From Oikopleura dioica (Eukaryota > Animalia > Chordata): DNA of 64,000 nt. Every line of letters begins with the position of its first letter. Position 1 is the stretch's first letter. The notes beneath the pieces are model-generated. The model worked only from the letters and a program-made list of their open reading frames with translations. It was not told the origin of the DNA and searched no databases. Below, piece after piece: positions 13,346-64,000 of the stretch. Position numbers and translations under genes: made by a program. The stretch lies in contig OU015567.1 in NCBI GenBank assembly GCA_907165135.1, forward strand, positions 6,572,001 to 6,636,000, written 5' to 3'.

Positions 13346-15216
13346 ATGGAGAAGCACAAATATCTCCCGTTTGCAGCTATTCTAAGTTTTGCAGTTTTTG
13401 TGGGTTTTATGTTCACGCGAGAAAGCAGACTGATAAATTTGCTAGAGAAATATTCAAACAAGCTGGAAGATTTTCAGACGAAGGTAAATTTCTACTTAAA
13501 AAAAAAATTCTCCTTCCTGAATTTTTAAGAGGGCGGAAATAACAAACAAACAGCCACAGAAAATTTACAAAATCAAAAGTCACAAAATCGAAGATAAAAT
13601 AACAACCACCCAAGCTTCATCTACCTTTTCTTTGAGCACAACCGAGCCTTCCGATTCCGAGAGTCAATTCATTCCAGAATATGAGCTTCACAAATCACAG
13701 CCAGAAGCTGGGCTCGGCAACCTGAGTGGAAAACCTGAGTCAGGGTCTGAAAGATCAAAAATGAAAAGCCGCGTAGCGGCTTTTTAATTACTAAGCCGCG
13801 AAGCGGCTTCGCAAAATAACCATTTCAATATATTTATGAATTCTGGCAAAGCCGCTTCGCGGCTTCGTTTTTAAAAAGCCGCTACGCGGCTTTTCATTTT
13901 TGATCTTTCAGACCCTGACTCATTTTTTCCACACAGGTTGCCGAGCTTAGACCAGAAAACAAAGCTCCACCTCCACCAAAATTCACCAATATTTCTTTGG
14001 TCGAACAAAATGGACTTTTCAACCGATTTCAGCGGCGAAAAACCAGGCTCGTTGAATTCTGCGAGGCTTGGAGCAAAGAGGGCCGCGTGACGCACAAGTT
14101 CAACAATCAGAAAATCGGAGTTGCGTTTCCCGAAGCAAAGTTGCTGCTTTGCGCGCCGTGGAAGTGCGGGTCTAGTTTTTGGAGGCAATATGTAGTCGCG
14201 CTGCATAAGAAGATCAACGGGCCAAACTGGTCAGACAGCCGGGTCAGGGGTGAAGATCCGGTCTACGCCCATCTATCGCCAGAGGAAAAGCGCAAGTTGC
14301 TGTACTCGCCCGAGACTGTTTCGATTTTGGTCGTGCGACATCCTCTTATTCGCCTCATTTCCGCGTGGAATGAGAAGTTTCACCGAGACTATCGCTATGG
14401 CTACTCGATGTTCAGAAGGGAGCACAATCTTTCGAAGTATGCGAAAGAAAAGGATGAAACGCACTGGGTTAGTTTTGCGGATTTTGCAAGGTGGATTGCT
14501 TTTGATGATTATCAGGATCGGGGTAGAAGAAAAATAAGGGGGTGGACAGCGAAAACTTTATTCAAGGTGTTTTAAGGCCTTTTAAGGGTGTCAACATCGA
14601 TTGAGTAAGGGTATCAGCTATGAATCGAACAACAGAAAAAATGCCAAAATTGATGTCGACACTCTTAAGAAAAATGCTGGTGTTTTCTTCTTACTGAAGA
14701 AAAATGCTGTAATAAGCAAGTATTCTATCCTCTTCCAAGTTGAAGAACAAACACTTTCGTCCACAAAGCTACATGTGTCCTCCTTGCGGCACTCGATTCC
14801 AGGAACGGGTTAGTCGCAAAAAGTAGCATCGTGAATTCTTCATAATTTGCGAACCCAAGGCGCTAGTATATTATAAAAGCCGAAACCATGACGGAAGATA
14901 TCGCCGCGGTTTTCAACAATCACACAAGACTCTTCGTCAATGATACGCTCTGGTCTGGATCGCCCTTTCATGAACGGATTTATTTCTTGAGCGCTTCTGA
15001 TCGCTAGAATTGCTAGGAATTCTTGAAAAACAGTCGATGAAAGGCGGCTTTGGAGGAAAATCGCCAGTTGACATGGCCAAAAAAGCAAGAGCTTTTTATG
15101 AAAACTTGGAGCGGCCGGTTTTGGAAGGATTGGTCAAAGTGTTCAAAATGGACATGTTGGCGTTTGGCTACACTTTCGATCTCAAAACCAGATCTATTGG
15201 TGGACTCACAGTTTGA
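13346..15216 (+). CDS. Type II membrane carbohydrate sulfotransferase (Sulfotransfer_2, CHST8-14-like)
   Basis: N-terminal TM; PAPS 5'-PSB motif CAPWKCGSSFW; 3'-PB motif VVRHPLIRLISAW; C-terminal FKMDMLAFGY. MITE in exon 2 and a TTAA element in a later intron. Confidence 0.88.
13708..13950. mobile_element. Family-A palindromic MITE inserted in the sulfotransferase stem-coding exon
   Basis: Arms CTGGGCTCGGCAACCTG...GAGTCAGGGTCTGAAAG and their reverse complement; internal AAGCCGC-nnn-GCGGCTT units; 8-bp TSD GCCAGAAG / ACCAGAAA (6/8). Confidence 0.88.
14586..14664. mobile_element. 79-bp TTAA-flanked mini-element (family C, Kolobok-like ends)
   Basis: TTAA|GGGTGTCAACATCGATT...ATTGATGTCGACACTC|TTAA; second copy at 21614-21695. 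Confidence 0.8.
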
Positions 15217-15284
15217 AGTTTGGGAATTTTTTATTGAATTTACTATGTACATTGTACAGGCAGAAAATATATTTACATAAAGAG

Positions 15285-17679
15285 CTATACAGAGAAATTG
15301 AAGTTTTTCTTATCGGTGTTTGAATTAATCGTTGGAGTTGAATATCTACCGATTTGGAGGTAATTGTCTTTGAGTTTCAGGGCGTAAATGAATGATCTGT
15401 CGATCATGAGCTCATACGAAGCCTGAGGATCGAGAGTGACAGTAGTTCCCAAGCTATCTGTTTTCTTGGAAAAGAAACCTTCTTCGCTGGTTGATCGAGA
15501 CTTTCTGGACTTGGCCGGATTTTTTCTGCCTGACTTGGATTTTCTGTTTCTTCGTGATTTTCTGCGAGATTTTCGGGCAGCTTTCTTTTGGGCTTTCACT
15601 TCCTTCTTGTGTTGAGTGAGAACGTCATCAGTGGTCGGGACGAGTTCGAAATGCACTCGCTGGAGCATGGAAGTCAGATGCGCAGTTGGCGTCGGGGAGA
15701 CATTCCACAATTCGGCGTTTCGCATTTGCATCAATCTTGTCGCTCCATATCTCTGAAGAAAAAATATATGCTAAAGTTCATTCTTCTGAAAAATGCCCTT
15801 TTCGAGGCCATAAATCAATCCCATGACCCGTATCATTATGTTTTTCTGACAGCCTCTCTCTCTCAGAGGTGTTGAGGAAAGACCCAATTATGAAATAAAA
15901 TGTTTACGGTCGTGAGATCGCAGCTGCGCGAACTTGCGCTTCACAACTTTAACGTAAATCCGCCCATTTAGGAACAATAAAATTAGCTGGCGGCTTTGAT
16001 CTAAAGCCCACCAACTCTTGAATTCTGGTCTGAAAGACGAAGAAGTACCTGTAGAACACTTTTGTCCAAATGATGGTTGATGTAAGTCGAGTCGATCAGG
16101 GGCATCGTCAAGTTGACACATTCGCGGATCACCATGACATTCTCGTCATCAGATTCGTGGTCAGCGCTCATCAAGCTCTTGAAGTCTTCTGGTGTCATTT
16201 TTCCTTCAAGCTTGTCGAGTGATTTGCCGTCAGGGACGATCAAGACCATTTTGTAGTTCTATTACCGGGCTGTTTATTTTTGAATTTTTACTGTGTATTT
16301 TTAGATAATACTTTTTTTGCGTCAATGACTCTTGATTAGGTCTTGAACGTCTCTTGAAATTAGAGTCGAATTTTAATATAGTAATAGCCCGTGGCCTTGA
16401 CTGCCATATTGAGATGAATAGCTTGCGCGGCTAATCTTTTGTGGATGATCTGGGTGACCATTACGTTCGCCAATGTCACCATCTTGACTGTGGAAGAAAC
16501 TGGGAGGTGGGATGAAAAAGGTCCGCTGCGGTCGTTTTGAAAAGGACGGTAAGAAATGGAGCTGGAAAAGATTGGCAGGCGCACGATTGACTGATCCGTG
16601 ACGACCATTCGGGAGGTTCTGAAATTTGGAGGATTAAAATTTTGAAATCAAGGAAGAGAATTTCGAGAAATTTCATTATTTACCTTTTGACGACGTGCTC
16701 GGTGGGGACCATGTCCGGGATGTGACGAAGATCAAGTTTGTCCGTGATGGCGTTGTAAAAATGATTGATTCCCTGGATGGCGTATCCTTCGTCCAAGTCA
16801 AAGTTCCGATTGATGATCAGGATGTTCATGTCGACGATTTTTGGACTGGCGGCGAAATTTGGCAGGATGCGGTAGCCGCGCTGGAGGTCCCATCGACCAT
16901 TCGCGGAGTAGACATCTGGGAGAGCCTGAACATGAAAATGAATTTTTATGAAAAACCATAACGATGAAGAAATTGCTCAAATTTTGTATTTTAGAAATTG
17001 TTCGAGGTGCTGAATCGCTTAATTTACCGGTATCTAACAGATATTTTTGAAATTCAGGGTCAAAATTTACCTTAATTTTGTTGTCATTGATATCCCGAAA
17101 AGCTTTGTTCAGCTGTCTTGTGACTTTTCCTCTGCACGAAACAATCTCCTTGATCTCTTTCTTTGTTTTACCAGTGGAGGACAAGCAGAGTGAGTGAAGT
17201 TGTCGGTAGGTCGAGAGAGGAGAAACAAGGAAGTTTCGATTCTGGTTGTAGGACTCTTTTAGTTGCGCGTTGTAGATTTTGAAGGCGAATTCTTCCTGAT
17301 AAACTGTATTTAGAATCAACTAAAGAGCTTGAACTCTACCTGAGAAAATCGCGAATCATCTTCGCTCGCTTCTATCTGATCCGGGAGTAAGGTGACTGTA
17401 GTAACGGTCAAGAGTTGAAGGCTCAGCCGTCTCATCAAATCTGTTGTTCTCCTATCTTGTGAGAAGAAAAAAACTATGCTTACTAGAGAGAGAATTATCT
17501 TCTTTTACGCTGGAAAGACGATAAAACTTCTTCTTGAGGCGCCATCTCGTGCCGAGCTCCGAGCTCGCCTTACACGTGGATCTAATCATCTCAGCACTTT
17601 TCGCGTAAAACATCAAAGAAAAAACGAAAAGTTCAAGTAGCCCATATTTGCCAGACTTGCCAGGTTCCTGCTTTGGCAA
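15285..17679 (-). CDS. Serpin-like protein, multi-exon (5' end uncertain)
   Basis: FAFKIYNAQL...NFLVSPLS...SSTGKTKKEI (helix A/B, shutter); GINHFYNAITDK; MVLIVPDGKSLDKLEGKM; C-terminal IDRSFIYAL...IGRYSTP. Confidence 0.72.
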
Positions 17680-18410
17680 TCACTCTAATTCTGACGAGGA
17701 AGAGGAACATCTTGTCTTTAAATTTTTATCGAACGCAATAATCATTAGTATTTATGGCGATGATTTTATATGTCATTAATCGAATGATTATTTATTCGAA
17801 TAATTGACAATAAAATGGTGATTCTCTTCCTTGATTGCAATTTCAATGTTTTTCAATGAATAATTTTAATGATTCTTTGGAATTTCAATCGAAAATTTGA
17901 AATTGTTGATTTCATCAAAAGCAAACCTTCACATTCAATTTAGATAACAATTATCGAGGAGCGCTTTAAAACGACAAAATACTTCCTTCGAGCAATTACA
18001 TTATGAATTATGAATTAGCTCCAGAGCCACCAAGTCTAGACCCGATTTGACCTACCCTGCTAGTGGAAATATTAAACTGTCCATTAATTTTAAATCTGAA
18101 GCAGATTGACCTCCGAACAGGACATTTATTACGTTCCTATTGCTCGAAATACATCATTATTTCATATGTCTTTCTGGAACACAAAACTTGGATCTTCTAA
18201 AAAGAGTATTTCGGCTACCGGTAGAATACCGGTATTTCAAATGCAAAGGCAATTGCAAGATAATGATGGTGTTGATTTATAATTATTGCGTGTTTGTTGC
18301 TCTGACGCAAGTTTTTCTGACACCTGAAAACAATCATGGATTGTTGCATTAAAATGCCTCCAAATCCAAAGAGAGGGGTCAAAAATCCATTCAAAATGGG
18401 GGAAAAGGAG

Positions 18411-18579
18411 CCCCCTAGTTTAGGCCTTAGGGGAGGGGGGGGGACTCCAGGGGGACCCTATTAGGAATAGGGTTGGTAATAGGGGGTTATCATTCGAGCT
18501 GCCCCTAACCCTAAATCTAACCCAGGAGACTACGCCCTCCGAAACACCCCCCCCCCCCACCTAAGGCCTAAACCAGGGG
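18411..18579. repeat. G/C-run inverted repeat
   Basis: CCCCCTAGTTTAGGCCTTAGGGGAG(G)n at left and (C)nACCTAAGGCCTAAACCAGGGG at right. Confidence 0.6.
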
Positions 18580-20500
18580 TCTTCGCCCCCCCCCGGACCC
18601 AGTCCCCTACGGGTAAAGGATAGCCCGAATAATAATAGCCCCCTACTTACCCCAAATCTTTCCAAAATAAGGGGGTAAGTGAACTTTTTTCGAAAAATGC
18701 TCAAGGTGACAAAAAGCCAACAAGCTGGGAAAACTTTAAAAGATAATTGATAGATGACACGCGCGCAGTAAAATTACGTTCTGGCAATATATTTAAGTTT
18801 TAAAATGCTAAAGGAAGTCTGCCACGCCGAAAATCGCCCATTTTCTGCGTATTTTTAGCTGCTTCCTCACCTGCACGCTGCGGATGAATAAATATAGACT
18901 CGGAAATCTGGTTTTAAAAAAAGGTATTTAAATTGTATTTGTATTACTGTTTTGGTTTCAATGCAGGAAAAAGAGATTTAAGTATTCGTGAAGTCCATTG
19001 TTTCTTTCTTTGGAGAATCGAGCATTTATGATAATTAGAAATTACGAGCATAATTTAGAAGAATTTCGCGGCGGAACTCGCAAAACAGCAATCGGTTTCG
19101 TTTAAGATATAATCGCAAATGTTCCTAAAATGAAATAATGGTCCTTATGGCATTAATGATAAATGGTAAATGATGAAAAAAGAAGGCGGTGCATTAGCGG
19201 TCTATCGAGAATATATGGCCCGTGCCAAAGCATGAATTTTTTATCATTTTTTCTTCGGATTTTGTATTTTACTCAATTTTGCGGATGATATACGGCCGCG
19301 AAATGACTGAATATCTTTCGCAAAGATGCCAGAGTGAAGCTAACATATTTTAATGAAGAGTAAAAATGCTCTAAGCGCACTGAACTCCCCGTAGGGTATC
19401 CACTACGCTAATTAAACATTCCCTAACCCTAGCCAAAGAAATCTTACCTGTGTTCTTCAGTTGCGACGTTATTCTCCAAAACATATGCACAAATCATACA
19501 AACGCGTCTTGAGCAGATATTTTTTTCCTAAAAAATGATAAGAAAAAGTTTCAATTTTCAGAAATTTTCATTACAATCGACTACCAAAATCATCCCTTCA
19601 GAAGAATCTAGCAGAATTCTCAAATTAAAAGACTCAAATTCTACTAGCCCTAGTTTTCGAAAATCGACTGTAATATCAACTGTAAAATCTTTGAGATACC
19701 TTTTCGGGACTACTGGCCGTGGTGGTGCTGATAAGCAAACCGGCCAAAAGCTGCATTAGAAAATTCATTGTGTCTTTTTTCGTGCTCTGAAATTAAATGA
19801 TCCTTTTTTCTGAATGAGGGATTTATATGATCCACATAGATAATATTGTTGGGCACACGCGCTGGCCATTCCTACTAGCGCCCTCGCTTGAGGAGTATGA
19901 ATATTCTATTCAAGAGAAGAGCCTGGGCGATTAGCGAGTATTCCTTGTTTTATGCGAATTTATATGCAAATTGAGGAATTTCCTCTTTGCCCGATGAAAA
20001 AGTGTACAAGATTGAAGACAACAGGATTTACTGACTGGAGAAGATCCTTCTCTTCTGACTCGACCCTCAGTTCTTCTGTTTCTCGGGCTTCTACACAGGT
20101 TGCCGAGCACAGATCCGGAGCCCAAACCCTTAATGATAATGGAAAGTCCGTGGCCGTTGCTGATTGAAGAAATGAACTGTCTGAAAACTCTATTCCCGGA
20201 CATGTCGCATGTTGCATGTTCCGTGTATATATGATTCCATCAGAGCTGATGGATCGTGTCGCTATAGAAGAATATCGACATAATCGAAAGTCTTGGTTTA
20301 TCCAAGCACTTTGATGGGAATGATCGTTTTTGCCCGTCAGATTTATGGGCGGCTCATCTCGTTATCCAAAAAGTAGCGACAGTATCTTGTCAAATTAGTC
20401 GGTCATTAATCCTGTCACTTACAGTCGTTCAAGCTACAGTAATGAGAATAGTGTCTCATCAAGGAAATTTCTAGAGCTTCGGCGAATTTCGAATTTGTTG

Positions 20501-22671
20501 ATGTCGAAAAATGAACCATCCAAAAAGAGAGAAAAAATGACGGACGCAGCAAACAATTTCAAAGCCGCAGCCAAGCTCGTCCTCCAAGACCTCGACCCAG
20601 AAGTCAAAGCGAAGCGCCAAGAGTTCATGGCCGGCGTGCCAAAATGCTGCCTAGTATTACACCTCCGAAAGCTGAAAAAGTTCAACCGTCAGGTTTTCAA
20701 GCAAAGCCAGTTTGTCGCGGCTCAAGAGCTGGCTTTTTCTATCAAAGTCACGTGCCAGGAGCAATCAAAGGAACAGGTTCACTTTTTTTCAGTTTCTAAA
20801 AAACCAAAAAGTTAGAATGGAATTGAACCCATTTGAAGAGCACAAAACCTCGAATTATTCAGCGGGAAAACAAAAAGTCACAGGTACAAAAACCGACGAT
20901 AAATGATCGATTTATTCGTTCTTGCAACTCAAATTTGTACTCTCACGTGTGCTCTTGTTAAAAGGCTCTCAAGGGGTGAGCCCAGTTGCCTCAGCAATCG
21001 ACATAGAAAGCCTGAGTCAGGGTCTGAAAGATCTTTAATGAAAAGCCGCGGAGCGGCTTCTTGAGAGATGAAGCCGCCAAGCGGCTTTGCCTTTAAAAAA
21101 GCCGCTTCGCGGCTTTTCATTAAAGATCTTTCAGACCCTGACTCAGGCTTTGACATACTAACTGAGCATAATCAATTCAGGAAAAAAGCAAGATAAAAGT
21201 AAAAACTTACGATTCGATAATGGACGGCGATGCTGAATTGGTAATTGACGCTACAAAAGCCTTCTCGCTCGTGCTCTCCAGAAAAAGCGACACTGAAGAC
21301 CATGAAATCCAATTCGACCTGATTTACATTGAAAAAAATGACGAAGAAAGTAATGAAAGATCGAAAGAGCGCAAAAGCGTCTTTGCAGTTGGAAGCGGTA
21401 AAAAACAGGCAAAAAAGAGGGCAGCATAATTTCTTAATTCAGCATCAATCAGTCTAAACGAGTTGCAAGAAGAAGCCTCAAAAGAAAAGAATATCGTCTT
21501 CAAAATCAAGGAGCAGACAGTTTGTGAGCCTGGGCTCGGCAACCTGTGTAGAAAGCCTGAGTCAGGGTCGAAAGATCTTTAATGAAAAGCCGCGTAGCTT
21601 CGCCAAAATTTAAGGGTGTCAACATCGATTGAGTAAGGGTATCTCTTATAAGTCGAACAACTAATATCAAAATGCCAAAATCGATGTTGACACTCTTAAA
21701 AAAATTAGTTGGGTATAATATGCGAAGCCGCTTCGTGGCTTTGTTTTTAAAAAAGACGCTTGCGGCTTTTCTTTTAAATTCTTTCAGACCCTGACTCAGG
21801 CTTTCTACACAGGTTTTCGAGCCCAGTTGTGAGCTAGAAGTCGAATTTGTTTGCAAATACGGGCAGTTTGGATACGGCTTCTCTCATCAGCTTGGCAGTA
21901 ACGATCGAACACCCTTTCAGAATATCGAAGATAGCATTTTCTTCCGCGTCAATGGCGAAAACGTAAGGCGAATCGGGGAAATGTCGATTTCCATTCGATA
22001 ATAAGGACATTTATTAAAATATTCAAAATAAATTTATTCCCGATATAGGAGCGAAAAGGACACGATGACATTCTATTGCCAGCCCACATTGGTCATCCAG
22101 CGGTATTGAAGGAACAGGGCTGAACAAACATTAATTACATTAATTTTGAAGGCTTAGTCACGTGTTTCTGTATCGCTAAGTACAAGAGTTCGAACCCTTA
22201 TCGACAGGTCAAGGATCCAGTGAATATTGGAAACCCGGCTGTTCGACAAGCTCTTTGGAATTTATCTGAAGACGTACGGTTCTTTTCTTAGCTCTAGAAG
22301 ATTAAACAGAGCTTTTCAGAGTCCATGCTTCTTGGTAGACAGCGAACGATCCTGTCGACTGGTCGAAGATTTGATGAAGACAAGAGGAAGGCTCGAGCAG
22401 AAACGACAGGTAGACAAATATTCGTGGCGTTGAATGAATGAATTTTCGAAAAAAGGAGTTCGCGCGAAAAATGTCCAGATCCGAGAGGATGAAATTCCTG
22501 CGCGACAACCTCTCAAGCAATAAAGAATCGAAGGGAGACGGAAGTGGACCCAGCTCTGGAGCTTCGCAAACTGGAGGACTCAATGTGCCCGGCACCACTG
22601 TTCGGCGAACTTCAAAGCAGAACTTGGAAGATTTCTTTAACAAAATAGCAAACAAGAATTTGCCAAAATGA
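20501..22671 (+). CDS. C2CD6: C2-domain protein similar to C2CD6/ALS2CR11 (CatSper tau), multi-exon
   Basis: After removing the MITE: AVGSASISLNEL...TVCELEVEFVCKYGQFGYGFSHQL, then ERKGHDDILLPAHIGHPAVL and RGRLEQKRQEF, resembling my recollection of vertebrate C2CD6 (VCRLEVEF..YGNFGYGFSHQL). Confidence 0.65.
20985..21152. mobile_element. Degenerate family-A MITE, intronic
   Basis: AGAAAGCCTGAGTCAGGGTCTGAAAGATC...GATCTTTCAGACCCTGACTCAGGCTTT with AAGCCGC/GCGGCTT units; outer ends eroded. Confidence 0.8.
21530..21826. mobile_element. Family-A MITE in a coding exon of the C2CD6-like gene, with a nested family-C element (21614-21695)
   Basis: Perfect 8-bp TSD TTGTGAGC (21522-21529, 21827-21834); intact arms; nested TTAA-flanked element. 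Confidence 0.92.
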
Positions 22672-23177
22672 CTTTTTTTCTGCCAGTTACATTTTTTTCT
22701 AAATAAAATTTTTATTCACAAATTTCGTCGAGAATCGTTTTGTTTCGCGAATTCATCAAAAATGAAGTGAAAAGAGACATTTATTCAAAACAAGTTACGG
22801 TTGAAATTCTCGTCATTTTACGGCGGCAGATGCCGTAATTTACCGCTCAATCATAAACCGCAAAGAATTTCCAGTTCAAAACCTCACTCATGAACTCTAG
22901 CATTGAGCGGTTTTAACCTATTTTACCTAAAAATAAACCTCTTGAAAAATACCGGCAAAGAACCGGGTCCTTGGCACTTTCCCAAAAACAGATCTCAAAG
23001 AAGCCTTCATAACGATATTTGCTTTTATACTGCATTTATTGATGAATAAAAGAAATAGAGACAGGATTAGACTACCAACTTGGAAAACGGTATTTTTCTA
23101 TACTTGGATAAGGAGATAATCCGGGGGTAAAATCTTGGTCTGCCAGGTAGGATGTTTAATTTAATATAATTTCAGAA

Positions 23178-23393
23178 CTGGGCTCGGAAACCTGTGAGGG
23201 AAACCTGAGTCAGGGTCTGAAAGAGCTGAAATGAAAAGCCGCGCAGCGGCTTTTTTCAAAACAAATTTTTTAATAGATTGTGATGAAAGTATTCGCTTAG
23301 CGGCTCCGTTTTTAAAAAGAGCCGCTGCGCGGCTTTTCATTTCAGCTCTTTCAGACCCTGACTCAGGTTTTCTGCACGGGTTGCCGAGCCCGG
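23178..23393. mobile_element. Family-A MITE
   Basis: CTGGGCTCGGAAACCTGTG...GGGTTGCCGAGCCCGG; flanks TTTCAGAA / ATTCAGGA (6/8). Confidence 0.85.
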
Positions 23394-24299
23394 ATTCAGG
23401 AAATATTGAAGATGGAAATGTTAATTTTAAATTCCGAGAAGAAATTCTGATTGAACCCGATTTCTAAAAAGAACTTGAACCAATTGAATGTCCATAAATT
23501 ATTTGCTAAAGTTGAGCAAGTAATTTCTATTTCTACTTTAGGAGACAAGAGAATTATTTACAACTACTGCATTCACCAATTGACTTTGGAAAAGAAGAAG
23601 GAGCGTGGTCACTTCGCAAAAGAAATAGAAAGCTGGTGACGAAAGCGAGGGATGAGTGGGTGCAGAAGCTACTAATGAGAATGTGGCTCCATGATTAGCG
23701 AGAGGTGCAGAAACCGCAGTGAATTGGTCTATTATTTACTTGGTGGTGCTCCGTCACGAGTGCGAGGGCGCCCCAGCGGAGGTGGTTTCTGGTGAATCAT
23801 GATGAGCTGCTTTTAAATTTCCGCCGAGCTCAAGCTTCAAGCTCAGTTCAAACAAAAAAAAACGAGCAGAATTTTGAATTCGCAAATTTAGATTTTCAAA
23901 AAAATGCCAGAGCAAATCGTTGCCTCCGTAACGACTCCCGTTTTCAGCAGAAAGTTCTTCGACTTCTCAGAGCCCAAGATTTCCTTCCTAGAAGACAACG
24001 ACTCATCCTTTGTCGACTTTTTCTTGAGCTCGGAAAGTGAAGAAAGCGAGAAGTTATCAAAGACGACTGAGGAAGAAAAAAAGCTATGAATCGACCCTTC
24101 TATTTACCTTCTGCTTTTACTGTAATAAAAAGATATTCAAGTGTTTCTAGAACTTCTTTGTGTACTTGATTTCAATTCCAGGGCAAGTTTAGTTTGAAAA
24201 AAGCAAGAAAACAGGAGCATCAAGACTCACAGATTATGCAGGTACTAAAATCTTGCAAAACTATTGCTAGAAAAACCACTAGAACGCGGAAAATCAGGA

Positions 24300-25009
24300 T
24301 GGTCACCAGACAGCGCCGATGTCATCAGACGAATCTGACGCGCCAAAGACGTCGCTTCGACGACTGACAAAAATCATCCAGAATCAGGACGAGAATGAAA
24401 AGCTCAATCCCTTTGGGTCAGGTCAAATAATAGACAATTTATAGAAAATATAGACAGTCAATTATCGTCTAAAATTTATAGAGTTGTTTTGGCTCTTTTT
24501 TAGAAATCAAAAACAGATGTTTTGACCTGAAAAAAAAAGACTTGCTTTGGCTGCATTTATCCTCGGTTGTTGCCTTATTTGTCCAATGAATACAGGTCAG
24601 GCTTTTGAAAAACATGTCGAGCTCCACAAAGGTTCAATTTTCGCTAATGCCGGCGCTCAATTTAAAGTTTTAAACTTGTCAGTCCATAAATCAAAATCAG
24701 ACAAAATGAAAAAAAAAGAGCTGAAAGTTCAAAATTGACGTAGATTTGGCAGCTTTAACCTTTTCAAGCTCAATAGGAACATAATTTTATAGCGGCAATT
24801 TGAATAATTGGAAATAGCCCCACTCACATAGTAAAAACGCAGAAAGTCGGAAGTGTCCCTTTGTGAAGCATCAAAGCATCAATCTAACGATTCGATTTTT
24901 CTCACTCTTTTTTATTTAGGAAGCAATGACGTAGACTTGCTTGCTCAATTTCTCAAAGCCGATTCAGACAAATCCTCCACCGTCGTGATGTACTTTGCCA
25001 CGGGTTAAA
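24300..25009 (+). CDS. Possible small single-pass membrane protein, exon structure uncertain
   Basis: Open exon-like segments (SSDESDAPKTSLRRLTKIIQ; LALAAFILGCCLICPM; SNDVDLLAQFLK) separated by GT...AG gaps. Confidence 0.3.
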
Positions 25010-25593: not shown

Positions 25594-27546
25594 ATGAAGA
25601 TTCCTCCTCTCATACCACTCTTTCTCGCAGCTGCAAGTGCACAAGGATACAATTACTACGACTATTCCGTCGATAGCTACGAGTACGATCTTGTCTCGGA
25701 TTACACTCTTGCTGGGGATTCAAGCTGGGATGTTCCACCTAGGATCGAGATTCAAAAAACAAACATTGTTTATGAAATGTTAACAGATATTTTTGATCAT
25801 GCGAAAGGGGTGATAACTCGAATAATTATTGGGACAGAGCTTGGAATAGAGAATTTAAAAGAACGAAGGAATTGGTTGTCGATGCTAGGGGGGACATAAC
25901 GACTCCTACTAAACCGTAATGATATTGATTCAGTGAAGATATTTGATTGGTTTTAGTCAAGTGCCTAAATCTTCGTCAACTTTAAAAACTTCTACGAATA
26001 TAAAAGCATCAACAACAAAGATTCCAACGACGACTTCTATTCCTACCACAACAACGACAACAACGGAGAGCACAGCAACTACAACAAGAACAACTACAAC
26101 GACAACTACGACGACCACAACCACCACATCCACGACGACCACGACTACGAACTCGACAACTACTACGACGACGACATCCACGACGACGACGACGACCACC
26201 ACCACATCCACCACGACAACTAGGATGGCCAAGACAGCCACGACAACCACGAGAACCACGAGAACAACATCAAGAAACACGACAACGACAACAACAACCA
26301 CAGTGAGCATAACAACTAGGTCACCGTTTTCTATTGAAATCAGCCCGAAAGTCCGCACCGACGAAAAAGTCGATCTGGAAGTCCCAGAGCTCCTTTACCG
26401 ATCTTCAAACACATCGAAGACATAGAAGACTCCTCCTTGGATTCCTCAGAAATCGAGCTTCCAATTTGCCCTTCAAGACCGCAGCAAGTCCAAAGATGCG
26501 GGCGACGACGAACTGAGCAACCGACACTTCGCGAAATCGAGATCGTAATTGACGATCTTGCTTACCACTTCGAAGATGTTCGAGATTCTCAACACTTTTT
26601 CCTGGAAGCAGCACAAAGTGAGTCGAACTTCGGCGAGTGGTCTCCTCAAATCTGGCCTGTGACTAAAGAGCAGTTTCTAAGAACGAAAGATCCAAGAATC
26701 AAAGGTACCGACGACCAATTGAATTTTGTAATAAGATGATCGCTAGATTCGTCAGGTGTTTCCGAAATAATAGGAAGACCTTGGTCAGACGTTACTTATG
26801 ACGAACTGCGGGAGCCTACGAACAGTGGGATATGCTTTTACCTCCTCTTACAATCGATTTCATGCTTCCCTATCCGCCACTCAACGGATCATCAAAATCT
26901 AATTTTGTCTAAAATTGGCTATCGCGATTTAGACACGATATTTATTCGCAATGAAACCTGCAACTATCCAAAGAAAATCCTTTTTCTCCTGGACACGTCC
27001 GCCTCCGTGAATGAGCATTTTTACGAAATGAAGATGCTCCTCAAAACCCTAAGCGATTATGTTTATGACTCTGATTGGAGCGTTAGAACTTTCTCAAGAA
27101 CAACGAGAAAGTACTGGCGACCTAAAGACATAATTGCGATTGAAAATGACAACTCAGTGACAGATATTCATTCTGCCGTTGATCCAATAATTGAAGAAGA
27201 CTTTCAATTGGATTCGGATGATCAAGGACGGGATTAACTTCATCAGGGTTTCATGATTACGAATTATTTGATCCTCATCGACTAAAAAATCCTGAAATAA
27301 GCGATGATCATCATCTCCGACGGCCACTTTTCGGACAAAACTCGAGCTTACTTATCAGCACGAAAACTCAAAAAGAGTCTACCTAGTCTTCAAATCCTCG
27401 CGATTGGGTTAGGACATCACATCGACAAGGAAGCTAAGTCTCGATTGGAATGGTTCACTGGCGATGCTTTGTCAATTTTCACAACGAAAACTGATGATGA
27501 ACGCGAATCAGCTTCGTCGACCATCGGTACATTCCGATGTCATTAA
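25594..27546 (+). CDS. Secreted mucin (Thr-rich) plus VWA-domain protein, copy 1
   Basis: Signal MKIPPLIPLFLAAASAQG; poly-Thr tract; VWA MIDAS motifs FLLDTSAS and IIISDG; inferred introns 25875-25956 (GT-AG), 26706-26756 (GT-AG, 51 nt) and 27227-27301 (GA-AG). An A5 run near 26364 breaks the frame. Confidence 0.7.
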
Positions 27547-27848
27547 ATTCCAAAAATAATTAAATGCTGCAATTCTTCTGCATAATAATTGACCGTCCAT
27601 TTGCTCGGTCAGCAGAGTTTTCCCTCTGACGCAGCAGTAAAGTACAGTAGATTCGCTGCAAATACAGTAAACAAACAAGCAGATCCAATTCAAAGGTACC
27701 TCTCGACCAAATGAACAAGTGAAATTCTTCTGCCTGAGCGACAATGTTTACTTCTTTGCGAAGAGAAGAGCTTCATTCTGTTTTCCTGTTTTTTACCAAC
27801 ATCAAATCATCAAATGCATTTTTCATAATTTTTTTAATAAACGAGAAA

Positions 27849-29802
27849 ATGAAGATTCCTCCTCTTATATCACTCTTTCTCGCAGCAGCAAGTGCGCAAG
27901 GATACAACTATTACGACTATTCCGTCGATAGCTACGAATACGATCTTGTCTCCGATTACACTCTTGATGGGGATTCAAGCTGGGATGTTCCATCTAGGAT
28001 CGAGATTCAAAAGACCCACATTGTTTATGAAATGTTTACAGATATTTTTGATCATGCGAAAGGGGTGATAACTCGAATAATTATTGGGACAGAGCTTGGA
28101 ATAGAGAATTTAAAAGAACGAAGGAATTGGTTGTCGATGCTAGGGGGGACATAACGACTCCTACTAAACCGTAATGATATTGATTCAGTGAAGATATTTG
28201 ATTGGTTTTAGTCAAGTGCCTAAATCTTCGTCAACTTTAAAAACTTCTACGAATATAAAAGCATCAACAACAAAGATTCCAACGACGACTTCTATTCCTA
28301 CCACAACAACGACAACAACGGAGAGCACAGCAACTACAACAAGAACAACTACAACGACAACTACGACGACCACAACCACCACATCCACGACGACCACGAC
28401 TACGAACTCGACAACTACTACGACGACGACATCCACGACGACGACGACGACCACCACCACATCCACCACGACAACTAGGATGGCCAAGACAGCCACGACA
28501 ACCACGAGAACCACGAGAACAACATCAAGAAACACGACAACGACAACAACAACCACAGTGAGCATAACAACTAGGTCACCGTTTTCTATTGAAATCAGCC
28601 CGAAAGTCCGCACCGACGAAAAAAGTCGATCTGGAAGTCCCAGAGCTCCTTTACCGATCTTCAAACACATCGAAGACATAGAAGACTCCTCCTTGGATTC
28701 CTCAGAAATCGAGCTTCCAATTTGCCCTTCAAGACCGCAGCAAGTCCAAAGATGCGGGCGACGACGAACTGAGCAACCGACACTTCGCGAAATCGAGATC
28801 GTAATTGACGATCTTGCTTACCACTTCGAAGATGTTCGAGATTCTCAACACTTTTTCCTGGAAGCAGCACAAAGTGAGTCGAACTTCGGCGAGTGGTCTC
28901 CTCAAATCTGGCCTGTGACTAAAGAGCAGTTTCTAAGAACGAAAGATCCAAGAATCAAAGGTACCGACGACCAATTGAATTTTGTAATAAGATGATCGCT
29001 AGATTCGTCAGGTGTTTCCGAAATAATAGGAAGACCTTGGTCAGACGTTACTTATGACGAACTGCGGGAGCCTACGAACAGTGGGATATGCTTTTACCTC
29101 CTCTTACAATCGATTTCATGCTTCCCTATCCGCCACTCAACGGATCATCAAAATCTAATTTTGTCTAAAATTGGCTATCGCGATTTAGACACGATATTTA
29201 TTCGCAATGAAACCTGCAACTATCCAAAGAAAATCCTTTTTCTCCTGGACACGTCCGCCTCCGTGAATGAGCATTTTTACGAAATGAAGATGCTCCTCAA
29301 AACCCTAAGCGATTATGTTTATGACTCTGATTGGAGCGTTAGAACTTTCTCAAGAACAACGAGAAAGTACTGGCGACCTAAAGACATAATTGCGATTGAA
29401 AATGACAACTCAGTGACAGATATTCATTCTGCCGTTGATCCAATAATTGAAGAAGACTTTCAATTGGATTCGGATGATCAAGGACGGGATTAACTTCATC
29501 AGGGTTTCATGATTACGAATTATTTGATCCTCATCGACTAAAAAATCCTGAAATAAGCGATGATCATCATCTCCGACGGCCACTTTTCGGACAAAACTCG
29601 AGCTTACTTATCAGCACGAAAACTCAAAAAGAGTCTACCTAGTCTTCAAATCCTCGCGATTGGGTTAGGACATCACATCGACAAGGAAGCTAAGTCTCGA
29701 TTGGAATGGTTCACTGGCGATGCTTTGTCAATTTTCACAACGAAAACTGATGATGAACGCGAATCAGCTTCGTCGACCATCGGTACATTCCGATGTCATT
29801 AA
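27849..29802 (+). CDS. Secreted mucin plus VWA-domain protein, copy 2 (intact as assembled)
   Basis: Same structure; the A6 run keeps the Thr-rich exon in frame (265-aa ORF 28198..28995). Confidence 0.75.
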
Positions 29803-30108
29803 ATTCCAAAAATAATTAAATGCTGCAATTCTTCTGCATAATAATTGACCGTCCATTTGCTCGGTCAGCAGAGTTTTCCCTCTGACGCAGCAGTAAAGTA
29901 CAGTAGATTCGCTGCAAATACAGTAAACAAACAAGCAGATCCAATTCAAAGGTACCTCTCGACCAAATGAACAAGTGAAATTCTTCTGCCTGAGCGACAA
30001 TGTTTACTTCTTTGCGAAGAGAAGAGCTTCATTCTGTTTTCCTGTTTTTTACCAACATCAAATCATCAAATGCATTTTTCATAATTTTTTTTTTTAATAA
30101 ACGAGAAA

Positions 30109-32061
30109 ATGAAGATTCCTCCTCTTATATCACTCTTTCTCGCAGCAGCAAGTGCGCAAGGATACAACTATTACGACTATTCCGTCGATAGCTACGAATA
30201 CGATCTTGTCTCCGATTACACTCTTGATGGGGATTCAAGCTGGGATGTTCCATCTAGGATCGAGATTCAAAAGACCCACATTGTTTATGAAATGTTTACA
30301 GATATTTTTGATCATGCGAAAGGGGTGATAACTCGAATAATTATTGGGACAGAGCTTGGAATAGAGAATTTAAAAGAACGAAGGAATTGGTTGTCGATGC
30401 TAGGGGGGACATAACGACTCCTACTAAACCGTAATGATATTGATTCAGTGAAGATATTTGATTGGTTTTAGTCAAGTGCCTAAATCTTCGTCAACTTTAA
30501 AAACTTCTACGAATATAAAAGCATCAACAACAAAGATTCCAACGACGACTTCTATTCCTACCACAACAACGACAACAACGGAGAGCACAGCAACTACAAC
30601 AAGAACAACTACAACGACAACTACGACGACCACAACCACCACATCCACGACGACCACGACTACGAACTCGACAACTACTACGACGACGACATCCACGACG
30701 ACGACGACGACCACCACCACATCCACCACGACAACTAGGATGGCCAAGACAGCCACGACAACCACGAGAACCACGAGAACAACATCAAGAAACACGACAA
30801 CGACAACAACAACCACAGTGAGCATAACAACTAGGTCACCGTTTTCTATTGAAATCAGCCCGAAAGTCCGCACCGACGAAAAAAGTCGATCTGGAAGTCC
30901 CAGAGCTCCTTTACCGATCTTCAAACACATCGAAGACATAGAAGACTCCTCCTTGGATTCCTCAGAAATCGAGCTTCCAATTTGCCCTTCAAGACCGCAG
31001 CAAGTCCAAAGATGCGGGCGACGACGAACTGAGCAACCGACACTTCGCGAAATCGAGATCGTAATTGACGATCTTGCTTACCACTTCGAAGATGTTCGAG
31101 ATTCTCAACACTTTTTCCTGGAAGCAGCACAAAGTGAGTCGAACTTCGGCGAGTGGTCTCCTCAAATCTGGCCTGTGACTAAAGAGCAGTTTCTAAGAAC
31201 GAAAGATCCAAGAATCAAAGGTACCGACGACCAATTGAATTTTGTAATAAGATGATCGCTAGATTCGTCAGGTGTTTCCGAAATAATAGGAAGACCTTGG
31301 TCAGACGTTACTTATGACGAACTGCGGGAGCCTACGAACAGTGGGATATGCTTTTACCTCCTCTTACAATCGATTTCATGCTTCCCTATCCGCCACTCAA
31401 CGGATCATCAAAATCTAATTTTGTCTAAAATTGGCTATCGCGATTTAGACACGATATTTATTCGCAATGAAACCTGCAACTATCCAAAGAAAATCCTTTT
31501 TCTCCTGGACACGTCCGCCTCCGTGAATGAGCATTTTTACGAAATGAAGATGCTCCTCAAAACCCTAAGCGATTATGTTTATGACTCTGATTGGAGCGTT
31601 AGAACTTTCTCAAGAACAACGAGAAAGTACTGGCGACCTAAAGACATAATTGCGATTGAAAATGACAACTCAGTGACAGATATTCATTCTGCCGTTGATC
31701 CAATAATTGAAGAAGACTTTCAATTGGATTCGGATGATCAAGGACGGGATTAACTTCATCAGGGTTTCATGATTACGAATTATTTGATCCTCATCGACTA
31801 AAAAATCCTGAAATAAGCGATGATCATCATCTCCGACGGCCACTTTTCGGACAAAACTCGAGCTTACTTATCAGCACGAAAACTCAAAAGAGTCTACCTA
31901 GTCTTCAAATCCTCGCGATTGGGTTAGGACATCACATCGACAAGGAAGCTAAGTCTCGATTGGAATGGTTCACTGGCGATGCTTTGTCAATTTTCACAAC
32001 GAAAACTGATGATGAACGCGAATCAGCTTCGTCGACCATCGGTACATTCCGATGTCATTAA
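30109..32061 (+). CDS. Secreted mucin plus VWA-domain protein, copy 3
   Basis: Same structure; the last exon has A4 instead of A5 in AACTCAAAAG near 31885 (frameshift). Confidence 0.7.
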
Positions 32062-32367
32062 ATTCCAAAAATAATTAAATGCTGCAATTCTTCTGCATAA
32101 TAATTGACCGTCCATTTGCTCGGTCAGCAGAGTTTTCCCTCTGACGCAGCAGTAAAGTACAGTAGATTCGCTGCAAATACAGTAAACAAACAAGCAGATC
32201 CAATTCAAAGGTACCTCTCGACCAAATGAACAAGTGAAATTCTTCTGCCTGAGCGACAATGTTTACTTCTTTGCGAAGAGAAGAGCTTCATTCTGTTTTC
32301 CTGTTTTTTACCAACATCAAATCATCAAATGCATTTTTCATAATTTTTTTTTTTAATAAACGAGAAA

Positions 32368-48877: not shown

Positions 48878-50221
48878 TTAAAGTTCGTCGGAATAAGAGG
48901 TCTTCTCGGCTTTGAATCCATCGCCAAAGTTATTCACAATTTCTCGCGGAGCTGTTCTGAATCCTTCAGCATCGAGTTTCTCCTTGATGATCGAGTCGGT
49001 TTTGTAAACTTCGGCGTAGAATTCGGGCTTTTTCAGCTTGCCCTCTTCATCCTCTTCAAAATTTATTTTACCAAAAATCAACAAGAAGTTTCTTACCCAT
49101 TTGCTTGGCGATTTCGACAACATGTTTGTGAATAATTTCCGCTCCCTTTTTCTTTCCTTCACTTTGGGCGGCATACCACTGCATGTAAATTGATGATACT
49201 TTAGTGAAGTCTTTCATGTGGCCGTTTTCGTAGTATTCGTCGAGGATCTTTTCCAGGACGCCTTGAATGTCGTCCTCTGAAATAATCAATGAAGAAGGGC
49301 TATTATTTCTTTTGAAAAGAATTTTGCTCGGCTTTGCAACCTGTGTAGAACCCTGAGTCAGGGTCTGAAAGTCTCAAATCAGAAGAATAAAGATAGATTG
49401 TGATTTTTGCAAAGCCGCTTCGCGGCTTCGATTTTAGAAAAGCCGCTACGCGGCTTTTTATGGAAGCACTTTCAGAACCCTGACTCAGGTCCAGAGAATG
49501 AGTAATTCTTACCGAGATCGTCAGTAAGAACTCGTTTCCCCCAGCTCTTGATGTCTTCCATAACAAAAGATCCTCGTTCAAGATGTTTTTGTAAAATGTG
49601 CTTGTCTCTTCCTGCATGCTTGACGAGGAGCATGGGAAGATCTTCGATCAAATAGCCGAAGGAGGCCTTGTTGCTTGGGTAGGCCATGTCGAGAAGACCA
49701 ACAGCGCAGCGCTCGTAGAAATATTCGGAAATGTCGACGGCGACGGGGTAGATTTCGGACTCGACGTCTTCGTCGGAGTCGTAGGCGAAGATGACCCAGC
49801 AGTAGGGACTGTCGTCGACGTATCTCATCGTCCTAGAAGAGGGGTTGAGGGAGAACCGTGGTCTTGTACGTACCCATGAGGCGTGAAAGGCATCGTGTTT
49901 GGAATGGACAACATCTTCTTCGTCAGTTCTTTGCCAGCATGTCGATCAGCCCACTGCTTGTTCGCTTCGACGAGTTTCTTGTTCGTCTGCGATTCCAGCT
50001 TCTCCCTGAAAAAATCGATCAACGAACATCATCATCCTTTGAACTTACGCTTCGACTTTATCCTTCAATGTTCCGATAGGGTTGTCGACGAAAACTTGTT
50101 TGTAATCGTAGGCCAGTCTTTTCTCGCCTGATTTACTATTGTTACTATTGTTTGTTTCTCCTTCAGTCTCTCCAAAGACATTTCCAATTAGCGCCAAAGC
50201 CAGGCTCTTCGCAAACTTCAT
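48878..50221 (-). CDS. Secreted or ER protein, possibly a redox-inactive thioredoxin/PDI-like fold
   Basis: Signal MKFAKSLALALIG; segment SPYCWVIFAY...ERCAVGLLDM without CxxC; ends SYSDEL, a KDEL-like retention signal. Confidence 0.5.
49326..49490. mobile_element. Family-A MITE, intronic
   Basis: GCAACCTGTGTAGAACCCTGAGTCAGGGTCTGAAAG...AACCCTGACTCAGG; lies between donor CTCG|GTAAG and acceptor TTTCAG on the minus strand. Confidence 0.8.
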
Positions 50222-51509: not shown

Positions 51510-51750
51510 TTCCCTTTCCCTATCAGAACAGCGTACTTGCTCAGTTATAAAACATTACCACCCAAAAAAACTGCTAGCACATGAAACATCTGCCTTCTCC
51601 TCCAACTTGCCCAAAAAATCATTATTATTTGCCCGATTAAAGCTTACAATCAATTTAATGACAAAGTCTTTCATCCAGTAAACATTTTGAAAACGGTCAA
51701 ATTGACGTATTTTAAATACCGGTATATATACAGTATTATCTGTATGGAAT

Positions 51751-51950
51751 CTGTGTTGAAAACCTGAGTCAGAGTCTGAGGACACAAATGAAAAGCCGCG
51801 TAGCGGCTTTTTTTTACGAAGCCGCAAAGCGGCTTCGCCAGTATTTACAAATTAATTGCAATGATAATGTTTCTTCCGCAAGGCGGCTTCGTTCTTAAAA
51901 AGCCGCGAAAGACCCTGACTCAGATTTTCTACACAGGTTCCTGGGCCTAG
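51751..51950. mobile_element. Family-A MITE
   Basis: AAAACCTGAGTCAGAGTCTGA...GACCCTGACTCAGATTTTCTACACAGGTTCCTGGGCCTAG. Confidence 0.8.
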
Positions 51951-56630: not shown

Positions 56631-56649
56631 TTCGATAGCATCGAAAGAT

Positions 56650-63000: not shown

Positions 63001-63930
63001 CTAATTTGAGGGATCGAAAAGAGCGCTGATTTCCTCTTGAACTTGGGCAGGCGTAAAGACGAAATATTTAGTTGGCTTTGAGGTGAAATCGCTTTTCTTC
63101 TGCCCAGCTTCCCAGAGTTCCGTGTAACTCGATGTAAGTAGTCGACTGATTTCGTCCTTTAGATCGTTCCGTAAAGCTTCATCGGGAACCGTGAGAGTCT
63201 TACAGGTGCTGCTGAGCTCGGTGAATTTCGAATTGAAGTCCTGGAAATAATTAATTATTTATTTTTAGCGAAATAGGGACTAACCCGGAAAAGCTCCTTT
63301 AGTTTCTGTTTCTCGCCTCCAGAAACTTTACTCGTGCTCATTTTTATCTCTGACAGGTCGATTTTGCGCTAAAAAAGTACCGTCTATTGTCCACTAAATA
63401 AAATAAAACGCACCTTTATTTCAACCCAAAGGTCTAAAAACTCGTCCCGTCGTTTTTCCTCTTCAACTGCCAATTGATTGTTGACGAAATCATCATGAGT
63501 AGACTCGATGTGTTTTGAAAGCTTCGATGAAGTGAGCTTTTTGCAAATGTAATGCTGATTGTTCAAGAAAAATAGTTTCTTTCTCGTCTCGTCCGGGTAC
63601 TGGAAGCTTTTCGTTTGCGTGGCTAGGGCAATGGCACCGATGATTCCAACCATGTAGTCCGAAAATCCACCTTGTCGTTTTCCTGGCCCGAGGATTTTTG
63701 AGTTTGGTACATAAATTACATTTGAAACTGTCCAAATCAAGGAAGAGTATTACCATTTGCTATTTAAATCCCCGATTCCTGTATGCGTAAAGATTTGATT
63801 GACAAGCTCACTGTACTCTTCCAGCGAGTTCAAAAAATATAATGCATCTGAAATCAGATTATGCACCGTCGCATCGTCAGGCAAGTTGTTTTTCGGTTTA
63901 TCTTGCTGAACCATTTCTTGATAACGCTTA
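63001..63930 (-). CDS. EXOC7: Exocyst component 7 (Exo70), 3' part; gene continues beyond the window
   Basis: LPDDATVHNLISDALYFL, LFFLNNQHYI and FNSKFTEL...TVPDEALRNDL...FTSKPTKY...ISALFD. Confidence 0.85.
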
Positions 63931-63978
63931 TTTTTGATGCAAAATTAGTCCCTTATCAGATAATTTGATTGTTCATAT

Positions 63979-64000
63979 CTGAGTTGAGCAACCTGTGTAG
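63979..64000. mobile_element. Left end of another family-A MITE (in an EXOC7 intron, truncated by the window)
   Basis: CTGAGTTGAGCAACCTGTGTAG. Confidence 0.6.

Follow-up and report, generated by a model that had tools for sequence, protein, structure and literature searches.

A palindromic MITE family with a splice-acceptor-like module in its terminal repeats: a plausible introner-like system in Oikopleura

Introduction

Larvaceans are a textbook case of fast intron turnover among animals, and the origin of their new introns is partly known. Work on maize by Wessler and colleagues, from the late 1980s to 1992, reportedly showed that the transposons Ds, dSpm and Mu are spliced from exons by cryptic sites at their termini. 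As proposed here for a palindromic MITE family (family A), removal in maize is imprecise and combines a splice site in or near the TIR with a partner in the host exon, leaving a gene product that is altered but partly functional. The maize cases are individual plant mutant alleles for which an in-frame design is not known to have been claimed, whereas family A is a naturally abundant animal family.

Like family A, the introners known from Micromonas and Aureococcus (cited as Huff 2016 in PMC11282704), and those of later pan-eukaryote surveys (PMC9860276; PMC12130899), are short non-autonomous DNA transposons with TIRs and a TSD that insert in coding exons. One splice site comes with the element and its partner lies in the flank or TSD, an arrangement that we propose for family A as well. 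Introner splicing has been shown by RNA and removal is exact, whereas for family A splicing is proposed from sequence and would leave 4-7 residues behind. A further difference is that most family-A copies in the 64-kb window (the whole stretch of DNA analysed) lie outside exons, where introner copies would be expected mostly as introns within genes. The tunicate Styela clava was validated in one of the pan-eukaryote surveys, and the main texts of the two surveys do not mention Oikopleura (PMC9860276; PMC12130899).

Two larvacean systems stand closer by host. Transposon-insertion introns in Oikopleura (Denoeud 2010) are listed in Table 1 of PMC3443670; they probably share the host group with family A, and the general notion that transposon insertions give rise to introns is common to both. 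Fritillaria borealis has non-canonical introns derived from MITEs (Henriet 2019, as summarised in PMC11282704 and PMC13326754). According to these summaries they share with family A a larvacean host, a MITE origin with TIRs, species-specific positions and a spliceosome that tolerates unusual donors, but their ends are mostly AG-AC or AG-AT, whereas the ends proposed for family A are G(T/C)-AG, the acceptor lying within the TIR. Frame-restoring excision at or near the element ends with non-GT/AG boundaries, as would be expected of an intron of the F. borealis type, does not work for family A: at 13708 and 21530 the spanning ORF is broken by the 8-nt TSD that stays behind when only the element is taken out.

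Results

BLAST and inspection recovered 11 copies or fragments of family A in the window, the same list as the roughly 11 of an earlier sequence-only reading of this DNA (Table 1). They are small (81-297 nt), dispersed and too short for a transposase, and their terminal inverted repeats share the terminus CTGGGCTCGGCAACCTGTGTAGAAA. The 17-nt terminus CAGGTTGCCGAGCCCAG is present 12 times in the window against 0.05 by chance, and a window scan for the 26-nt end motif gave 8 occurrences with at most 3 mismatches, where 0.00 were expected. The length of the TSD is 8 bp. Its two copies are identical at 21530 (8/8), differ at one position at the 35955 composite (7/8) and at two positions at 13708 and at 23178 (6/8 each); none is recognisable at 38635 and 42144. 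In the independent DNA run X28, summed contig depth was 32,000-71,000 on MITE bins versus ~90 on unique sequence, and contig breaks fall precisely at 21529-21533 and 21826. Family A is thus a high-copy repeat whose termini lie where they are placed here. TIRs, TSD, copy number and an empty site (below) confirm family A as a real mobile element of the MITE type; it is a non-autonomous DNA transposon, forms an almost perfect palindrome and occurs in many copies in a compact, larvacean-like genome.

The 8-bp TSD is a feature of hAT elements. The hAT terminal motif is YARNG, which the family-A termini (CTGGG...CCCAG) do not match, as their second base is T and not A. No autonomous hAT partner with the same TIRs was found in the 64-kb window, no Pfam match to a DDE transposase was obtained in the 10 of 22 window ORFs of at least 160 aa that were scanned, and a metagenome scan for a partner returned two chance bacterial matches only.

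Each TIR reads, from the inside outward, a branch-point-like CTGAC, 18 nt with a pyrimidine run, CAG/G (the slash marking the splice boundary) and a 14-nt tail that is stop-free in all three frames. The earlier observation of CAG/G 14 nt inside the end holds for 14 of 16 arms, where the distance is exactly 14 nt, on both strands; the whole 3' splice-site-like module (CTGAC or CTTAC-N18-CAG/G) is found in 12 of 14 arms. With arms that are 77-93% complementary and CAG/G on both strands, the elements are indeed near-perfect palindromes offering a candidate acceptor in either orientation. A strong 5' splice site of their own is lacking. The RNA of the whole element is predicted to fold into a ~110-bp hairpin (-182 kcal/mol, z = -22.5), whose stem buries the two splice sites; this counts against the proposed splicing.

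Table 1. Family-A copies, host features and candidate splice sites in the window
Feature	Position	Strand	Remarks
Sulfotransferase gene, 5' part	13346-14808	+	PF03567 on relatives; L001-L005 alignment
Sulfotransferase exon 1	13346-13483	+	then GT-AG intron 13484-13529
Sulfotransferase exon 2	13530-14515	+	interrupted by MITE 13708-13950
Left TSD GCCAGAAG	13700-13707	+	last base and first element base form GC donor (13707-13708)
Family-A copy, 243 nt	13708-13950	.	inside exon 2 of plus-strand Sulfotransfer_2 gene
3' splice-site-like module, right TIR	13905-13950	+	CTGAC, pyrimidine run, CACAG (AG 13935-13936), tail 13937-13950
Right TSD ACCAGAAA	13951-13958	+	
GA-AG intron, sulfotransferase	14516-14739	+	next exon 14740-14808
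Solo 3' terminus, family A	20082-20112	+	motif scan, BLAST
Family-A copy, degraded termini (CACAG to CATAC)	about 20985/21004-21158	.	intron between two CatSper-tau exons
Candidate splice sites at 21530	GT donor 21520-21521; acceptor AG 21811-21812; tail 21813-21826	+	
TSD TTGTGAGC	left 21522-21529, right 21827-21834	+	perfect
Family-A copy, 297 nt	21530-21826	.	coding exon, plus-strand CatSper-tau (PF15729) homologue
Nested TTAA MITE	21610-21699		inside 21530 copy
Full family-A copy	23178-23393	.	one acceptor mutated to CGG
Composite TSDs	CAACCTTG 35947-35954; CAACCTGG 38307-38314		
Composite insertion	35955-38306	- (host ORF)	family-A 35955-36081, 2.2-kb element, remnant
Composite splice candidates	GT donor 38310-38309; acceptor AG 35970-35969	-	donor CAG/GTTGCT
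Palindromic element, 2.2 kb	36082-38292		inserted into last bases of family-A copy 35955-36081
Family-A end remnant, 14 nt	38293-38306		
Family-A copy	38635-38794	.	no recognisable TSD
Mini copy, 81 nt	42144-42224	.	both termini present
Inferred intron around 49327-49490	donor GT 49512-49511; acceptor AG 49278-49277	-	gene model from frames only
Family-A copy lacking one terminus	49327-49490	-	within inferred intron GTAAGA...TTTCAG
Family-A copy, 5'-truncated	51748-51950	.	
Left terminus of further copy	63979-64000	.	cut by window end

Three of the 11 copies interrupt ORFs, two lie in inferred older introns, and the others are in short-ORF or indel-rich sequence. The region of the solo terminus is probably non-coding because its flanks, compared with X28, carry many indels and no third-position bias; the copy at 23178, judged from its frames, is non-coding since the spanning ORF is short. 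The minus-strand copy at 49327 has its own CACAG/G 66 nt upstream of the inferred intron acceptor, and its use would lead to a TAA stop. Contigs L004 and L005 likewise hold an intact built-in acceptor inside an intron, where use would give a stop codon. On these gene models, productive splicing in the two intronic copies cannot run through the built-in acceptor.

The copy at 13708, whose 101-nt arms are 93% complementary, interrupts a gene that is continuous at this site in the relatives P0001-P0003 and in contigs L001-L005. Empty sites elsewhere had been suggested as a check on the insertion, and contig L001, from a wild relative, does hold the unoccupied target, reading GCCAGAAA. Relative to this, position 13707 has undergone a derived change, A>G, to which the GC donor at 13707-13708 owes its existence; that donor (GAA/GCTGGG) is poor. 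A GA-AG intron in the same gene indicates that non-GT donors are used in the lineage. Unspliced translation into the element meets a stop after 26 codons, and the conceptual ORF is complete with the GC(-1) junction proposed earlier.

Exon 2 has accumulated 11 synonymous and 6 non-synonymous window-specific changes (omega ~0.15), of which 8 and 2 fall in its catalytic part. Six or fewer non-synonymous changes would be expected with P < 0.01 had the gene been neutral for at least one third of the branch, and neutrality for at least a quarter is disfavoured at P < 0.05. If the inserted copy started out perfectly palindromic, the 9 mismatches in 105 arm positions date the insertion to about the middle of the branch. 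The sulfotransferase thus looks constrained and, with its ORF otherwise intact and 11 synonymous against 6 non-synonymous changes, fits poorly with a gene dead since insertion.

At 21530 the element sits between ...EQTVCE and LEVEFVCKYGQFGYGFSHQL, splitting a conserved YG.FGYG..H.L segment that aligns to ICEVVIDFIFRYGLFGYGYGHQL of PF15729 proteins. Distant CatSper-tau homologues are continuous across the site, so that here, as at 13708, relatives are intron-free at the position of the insertion, as with introners. The GT(-10) junction would give the in-frame product EQTVFEPSCELEVE. The sequence-only reading had placed a third copy in a coding exon too; 13708 and 21530 bear this out with conserved homologues, but the minus-strand host ORF of the 35955 composite found no homology support.

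The in-frame donors named for the three loci (GC at -1 at 13708, GT at -10 at 21530, GT at -4 at the 35955 composite) are all present in the flanks, and the arithmetic behind them (14 + 8 = 22 nt) is correct, giving scars of +7, +4 and +6 aa, respectively. Donors of this kind are common by chance: 39% of random sites offer a GT or GC at one of the allowed offsets, which makes three of three loci near chance (p = 0.06), and at +2 there is a GG donor in every case. Finding one in frame at each copy is thus weak evidence for splicing. There are, moreover, 24-31 alternative in-frame donor/acceptor pairs per locus, some of them scar-free. Mapping of the RNA runs X4-X6, which come from another lineage, to the window yielded 6-139 partial reads at 90-95% likeness, among which no junction was visible.

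Discussion

Family A is, on its sequence features, plausible as an introner-like system. An insertion into a coding exon would deliver the acceptor borne by the TIR, the upstream flank or the TSD would furnish the donor, and what remains after splicing would be 14 + 8 nt less the offset of that donor. The proposed junctions are 13706^13937, 21519^21813 and, on the minus strand, 38311^35968, by which the host proteins would gain the seven, four and six residues given above. Within this explanation, splicing itself and the choice of junction are what we infer. That the spliceosome removes the exonic copies in this manner, as the sequence-only reading proposed, is the account we tentatively favour, at a level of confidence that remains limited.

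The exonic copies might instead simply disrupt their genes, as null alleles in a very large and highly polymorphic population or recent pseudogenes, with an acceptor motif that is incidental to a TIR bound by transposase. Reading through the exonic copies gives early stops, the chance frequency of in-frame donors is what this account expects, and a scar-carrying protein was not found in large protein collections. A random window position lies, in half of the cases, in an ORF that extends at least 30 codons to either side, and three of 11 copies in ORFs in so gene-dense a window fits selection against exonic copies. The low omega of a sulfotransferase free of other lesions and the intact conserved CatSper-tau motif downstream of 21530 argue against it, however. 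Nor are the insertions brand new: their arms differ at 9/105 and 8/53 positions, the 13708 TSD has two mismatches and the 21530 copy carries a nested insertion. Three such insertions within 64 kb would also be an implausible load of null alleles. We regard gene disruption as an unlikely explanation, though one with real weight.

If the copies are spliced, other junctions may be used: scar-free removal of the element with one TSD, a left-arm donor (TGA/GTCAGG or AGG/GTCTGA) joined to the terminal AG, or several isoforms aided by the hairpin. At 13708, a GC-AG pair, GC(-8) with AG(0), running from the first TSD base to the terminal AG, restores HKSQPENKA exactly, and at the 35955 composite a GT-AG pair, GT(-4) with AG(+4), using the AG/GT in both TSD copies, restores NVQVAIRNH exactly; at 21530 a scar-free solution is absent because the TSD starts with TT. 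At both 13708 and 21530 the terminal AG keeps the frame when paired with canonical GT donors at +31 and +37, the predicted hairpin would juxtapose the element ends, and the GA-AG introns of the lineage lend further support. Against these options, the pyrimidine tracts at the terminal AG and TSD acceptors are weak (0.41-0.53 versus 0.59-0.71 at the -14 site), and, counting from CTGAC, the first AG to lie at a normal distance (18 nt) is the one at -14. We regard splicing by junctions of these kinds as unlikely, though not remote. Trans-splicing is known in larvaceans, and an acceptor without a strong partner donor resembles a trans-splice site, its sole support; a putative spliced-leader acceptor producing 5'-truncated mRNAs of the downstream host part is nonetheless hardly credible, as the sulfotransferase frame downstream of 13950 has no early in-frame ATG and the N-terminal membrane anchor seen in exon 1 would be missing from the product.

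Compared with the reading from which it started, this analysis adds two insertions firmly in conserved exons, one empty site and a measure of how weak the donor argument is. If splicing via the TIR acceptor occurs, an element with its own 3' splice site in conserved exons of genes otherwise intact would be intron birth in progress in a chordate. It would also indicate that imprecise, scar-leaving splicing can render exonic insertions tolerable, which would tie transposon activity directly to small protein insertions. A stronger claim would make family A a chordate introner that is active, with a ready-made branch point, pyrimidine tract and acceptor in its TIR for either orientation; any exonic insertion would become an intron at once, given a G-N donor in phase in the flank, and leave a scar of 4-7 residues. 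This goes further than we think likely. Were it true, recognisable peptide scars would be left in proteins, and family A, together with similar families, would be a main engine of the extreme intron turnover of Oikopleura and of its flat intron-phase distribution.

A repeated palindromic family with a splice-like signal in its ends

The observation of family A, a palindromic MITE family, is confirmed and strengthened by this analysis. BLAST of full copies against the window, together with inspection, recovered 11 copies or fragments, the number the sequence-only reading had approximately put forward and each where it had been placed. The copies are near-perfect palindromes, and an alignment of 19 arms gives CTGGGCTCGGCAACCTGTGTAGAAAACCTGAGTCAGGGTCTGAAAG as the consensus end. 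The window has 8 matches to the 26-nt end motif at up to 3 mismatches, where 0.00 are expected, and 12 matches to the 17-nt terminus, where 0.05 are expected. The target-site duplication (TSD) is 8 bp; its two copies agree fully at 21530, in 7 of 8 positions for the 35955 composite, and in 6 of 8 for the copies at 13708 and 23178. In an independent DNA run (X28), contigs stop at 21529-21533 and at 21826, and their summed depth is 32,000-71,000 over MITE bins against about 90 over unique sequence, so that the family is highly repeated and has the ends described here.

No transposase was found in the window, with Pfam scans covering ten of its 22 ORFs of 160 aa or more, and Rfam found no family over its whole length. 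The TSD length resembles that of hAT elements, but the CTGGG terminus does not match the hAT end motif. A 20-nt subterminal motif had two matches in metagenome contigs, both attributed to chance and both in bacterial-looking contigs. The solo end at 20082 was considered as a fossil scar and ruled out, its flanks differing from X28 by many indels that show no codon-position bias.

An acceptor-like CAG/G 14 nt inside the end had been claimed, and it was found with its pyrimidine run in 12 of 14 arms. In these the outward order is CTGAC (or CTTAC), 18 nt including the run, CAG/G, 14 nt and the terminus, an order that reads as the layout of a putative branch point, tract and acceptor. Because the family is palindromic the signal lies on both strands, as expected of an acceptor proposed to be available in either orientation. 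The 14-nt tail, as read from the sequence, is free of stops in all frames, and the last two bases of the element are also AG. Family A holds no donor of quality comparable to this acceptor.

Features of the window, with positions and remarks
Feature	Position	Remarks
Integrase ORF	135-1325	retroviral-type integrase domains rve and Integrase_H2C2; likely from an LTR retrotransposon
Adenylate-kinase-like gene	8545-12878	large, multi-domain (ADK and several P-loop kinase hits); directly upstream of the sulfotransferase gene, same strand
TTAA-ended MITE, fragment	11500-11524	second family, unrelated to A; ends TTAAGGGTGTCAACATCGAT...
Sulfotransferase intron	13484-13529	
Proposed donor	13707-13708	GC
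Family-A copy	13708-13950	in the sulfotransferase gene
Sulfotransferase intron	14516-14739	GA-AG
TTAA-ended MITE	14582-14668	within the GA-AG intron
Inverted repeat	18398-18593	G-runs and C-runs; 46-nt arms, 80% complementary
Family-A copy	21004-21158	in a CatSper-tau intron; CAG lost
Proposed donor	21520-21521	GT
Family-A copy	21530-21826	in the CatSper-tau homologue
TTAA-ended MITE	21610-21699	nested in the family-A copy at 21530
Tandem units	~25900-33550	four of ~2.26 kb, each repeating one set of candidate exons and introns
Tandem-unit ORFs (examples)	28198-28995; 30458-31255	both 265 aa; no Pfam hit
Composite	35955-38306	bordered by CAACCTTG and CAACCTGG
Family-A part of composite	35955-36081	
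Palindromic element, 2.2 kb	36082-38292	arms of tandem repeats open in several frames (KAKNSPKAK-like)
Inverted repeat in this element	36638-37074	
End remnant, 14 nt	38293-38306	
Proposed donor	38310-38309	GT, minus strand
Family-A mini copy, 81 nt	42144-42450 region	~100 nt upstream of an exon with a bHLH-like HNEVERRRRDKIN motif
Family-A copy	49327-49490	in an inferred minus-strand intron, GTAAGA...TTTCAG

Insertions into coding exons

Three copies had been said to lie in coding exons. Homologues uphold this for those at 13708 and 21530, as does an empty site for the former; the third, at 35955, is unconfirmed and finds no support in Pfam or Atlas. Both flanks of the 13708 copy belong to a Sulfotransfer_2 (PF03567) gene. 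Metagenomic relatives of the protein are uninterrupted at the site (P0002, 96% identity; P0001, 95%; P0003, 85%), and a relative's genomic contig of 982 nt (L001) carries the empty target GCCAGAAA. By these comparisons the copy lies in a coding exon, at a variable stem with the membrane anchor on one side and the catalytic domain on the other, where the relatives also vary by in-frame indels.

For 21530, the upstream exon served as query in an exhaustive HMMER search, and Pfam names the homologues so obtained CatSper-tau (PF15729). In their alignment the insertion falls inside ...VCE/LEVEFVCKYGQFGYGFSHQL, facing ICEVVIDFIFRYGLFGYGYGHQL, and this homology likewise assigns the copy to a coding exon. 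The 57-residue exon that follows gave no match as a search query. Open flanks alone are insufficient proof of a coding exon, since half of random window positions have an ORF running across them with 30 codons or more to either side.

The 35955 locus is a nest, in which a 2.2-kb palindromic element sits in the last bases of a family-A element. Removal of the composite joins open frames on both strands, and the minus-strand frame begins with a signal-peptide-like methionine. Pfam and Atlas lend no support to a gene identity for this host. We read in it a likeness to a C-type lectin motif, but a lectin identity was rejected, with no hits in Pfam and none meaningful in Atlas.

Proposed junctions

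The claimed donors are all present at these three loci. Joined to the -14 acceptor (the CAG/G of the terminal inverted repeat) they keep the frame and would add 7, 4 and 6 residues at 13708, 21530 and 35955, within the predicted scars of 4-7 residues. Such donors are weak evidence, because GT or GC occurs at an allowed offset at 39% of random sites (GT only, 13%), giving p = 0.06 for three of three loci, because position +2 always offers a GG donor, and because many other pairs would serve. At 13708, 31 G-N...AG pairs are in frame and free of stops, as are 24 GT/GC pairs at 21530 and 30 at 35955. Exact, scar-free removals are among them: at 13708 the terminal AG would pair with a GC on the first base of the TSD, and at the composite each TSD copy offers AG/GT. 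We hold the -14 acceptor with flank donors to be a possible main route, somewhat doubtful as it stands, and think it fairly probable that the exonic copies are spliced out by some frame-keeping route.

At 13708, comparison with the empty site shows that a derived A>G change (position 13707) generates the GC donor, which is no more than suggestive. Searches around the gene for a scar-bearing protein gave only insertion-free metagenomic relatives and no annotated protein of the Oikopleura dioica genome. Over the interval 19000-24400, with its four copies, three RNA runs (X4-X6) yielded only partial reads (19, 139 and 6), all 90-95% alike and none spanning a junction; this RNA therefore belongs to another lineage that bears the same species name.

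Several points temper the splicing model. As RNA, the 13708 element is predicted to fold at -182 kcal/mol (shuffle mean -67, z = -22.5) into a hairpin whose stem, about 110 bp long, contains both the proposed donor and the acceptor, which could hide them or draw them together. In the copy at 49327 the built-in acceptor would, in the phase of that intron, lead to TAA, and only 3 of the 11 copies in the window interrupt an ORF.

Constraint and age of the sulfotransferase insertion

At 13708 reading through the element meets a stop after 26 codons, whereas the ORF is complete with the proposed GC/-14 junction. Exon 2 was aligned with relatives' contigs (L004/L005, L001 and L002/L003) and changes were polarised. 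Specific to the window are 11 synonymous changes against 6 non-synonymous ones; for the catalytic part the counts are 8 and 2. On this branch dS is about 0.07 and omega about 0.15. The probability of 6 or fewer non-synonymous changes is 0.045 if the gene was neutral for a quarter of the branch and 0.00007 if for half. The arms of the 13708 element differ at 9/105 positions and its TSD copies at 2/8, and the nearest relative, L004/L005, lacks the insertion; together these suggest an insertion of roughly half the age of the branch, assuming that the copy inserted as a perfect palindrome. The remaining exons and introns are intact. This indirect evidence points to a host gene that still works. 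For the exonic copies in general we regard plain null alleles as rather unlikely.

Two introns of this gene, the GA-AG intron and that at 13484-13529, are both missing from the 85%-identical relative (L002/L003), a case of introns recently gained or lost in the species complex; the GA-AG intron also indicates that the lineage splices non-GT donors. In wild relatives this intron holds a family-A 3' remnant with intact tract and CAG/G (L004:956-1006, L005:906-956), which implies that the family is common to different lineages and that the intron is a repeated landing place. Since use of the remnant's CAG/G would meet a TAA stop, the productive acceptor is one about 50 nt downstream.

Relation to known systems

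Maize Ds and dSpm insertions are spliced imprecisely, and the family-A idea resembles this behaviour. Introners take one splice site from the element and the other from the flank or TSD (PMC11282704, PMC9860276, PMC12130899); the scheme proposed here from sequence is alike in both respects. It is also akin to the MITE-derived introns of another larvacean, Fritillaria borealis (PMC11282704, PMC13326754). Introns from transposon insertion in Oikopleura already appear in Table 1 of a review, which credits Denoeud 2010 (PMC3443670). An Oikopleura source accords with the short introns, the GA-AG intron and the relatives from marine metagenomes. It is plausible that family A acts as an introner, creating introns that would leave in-frame peptide scars in its hosts.
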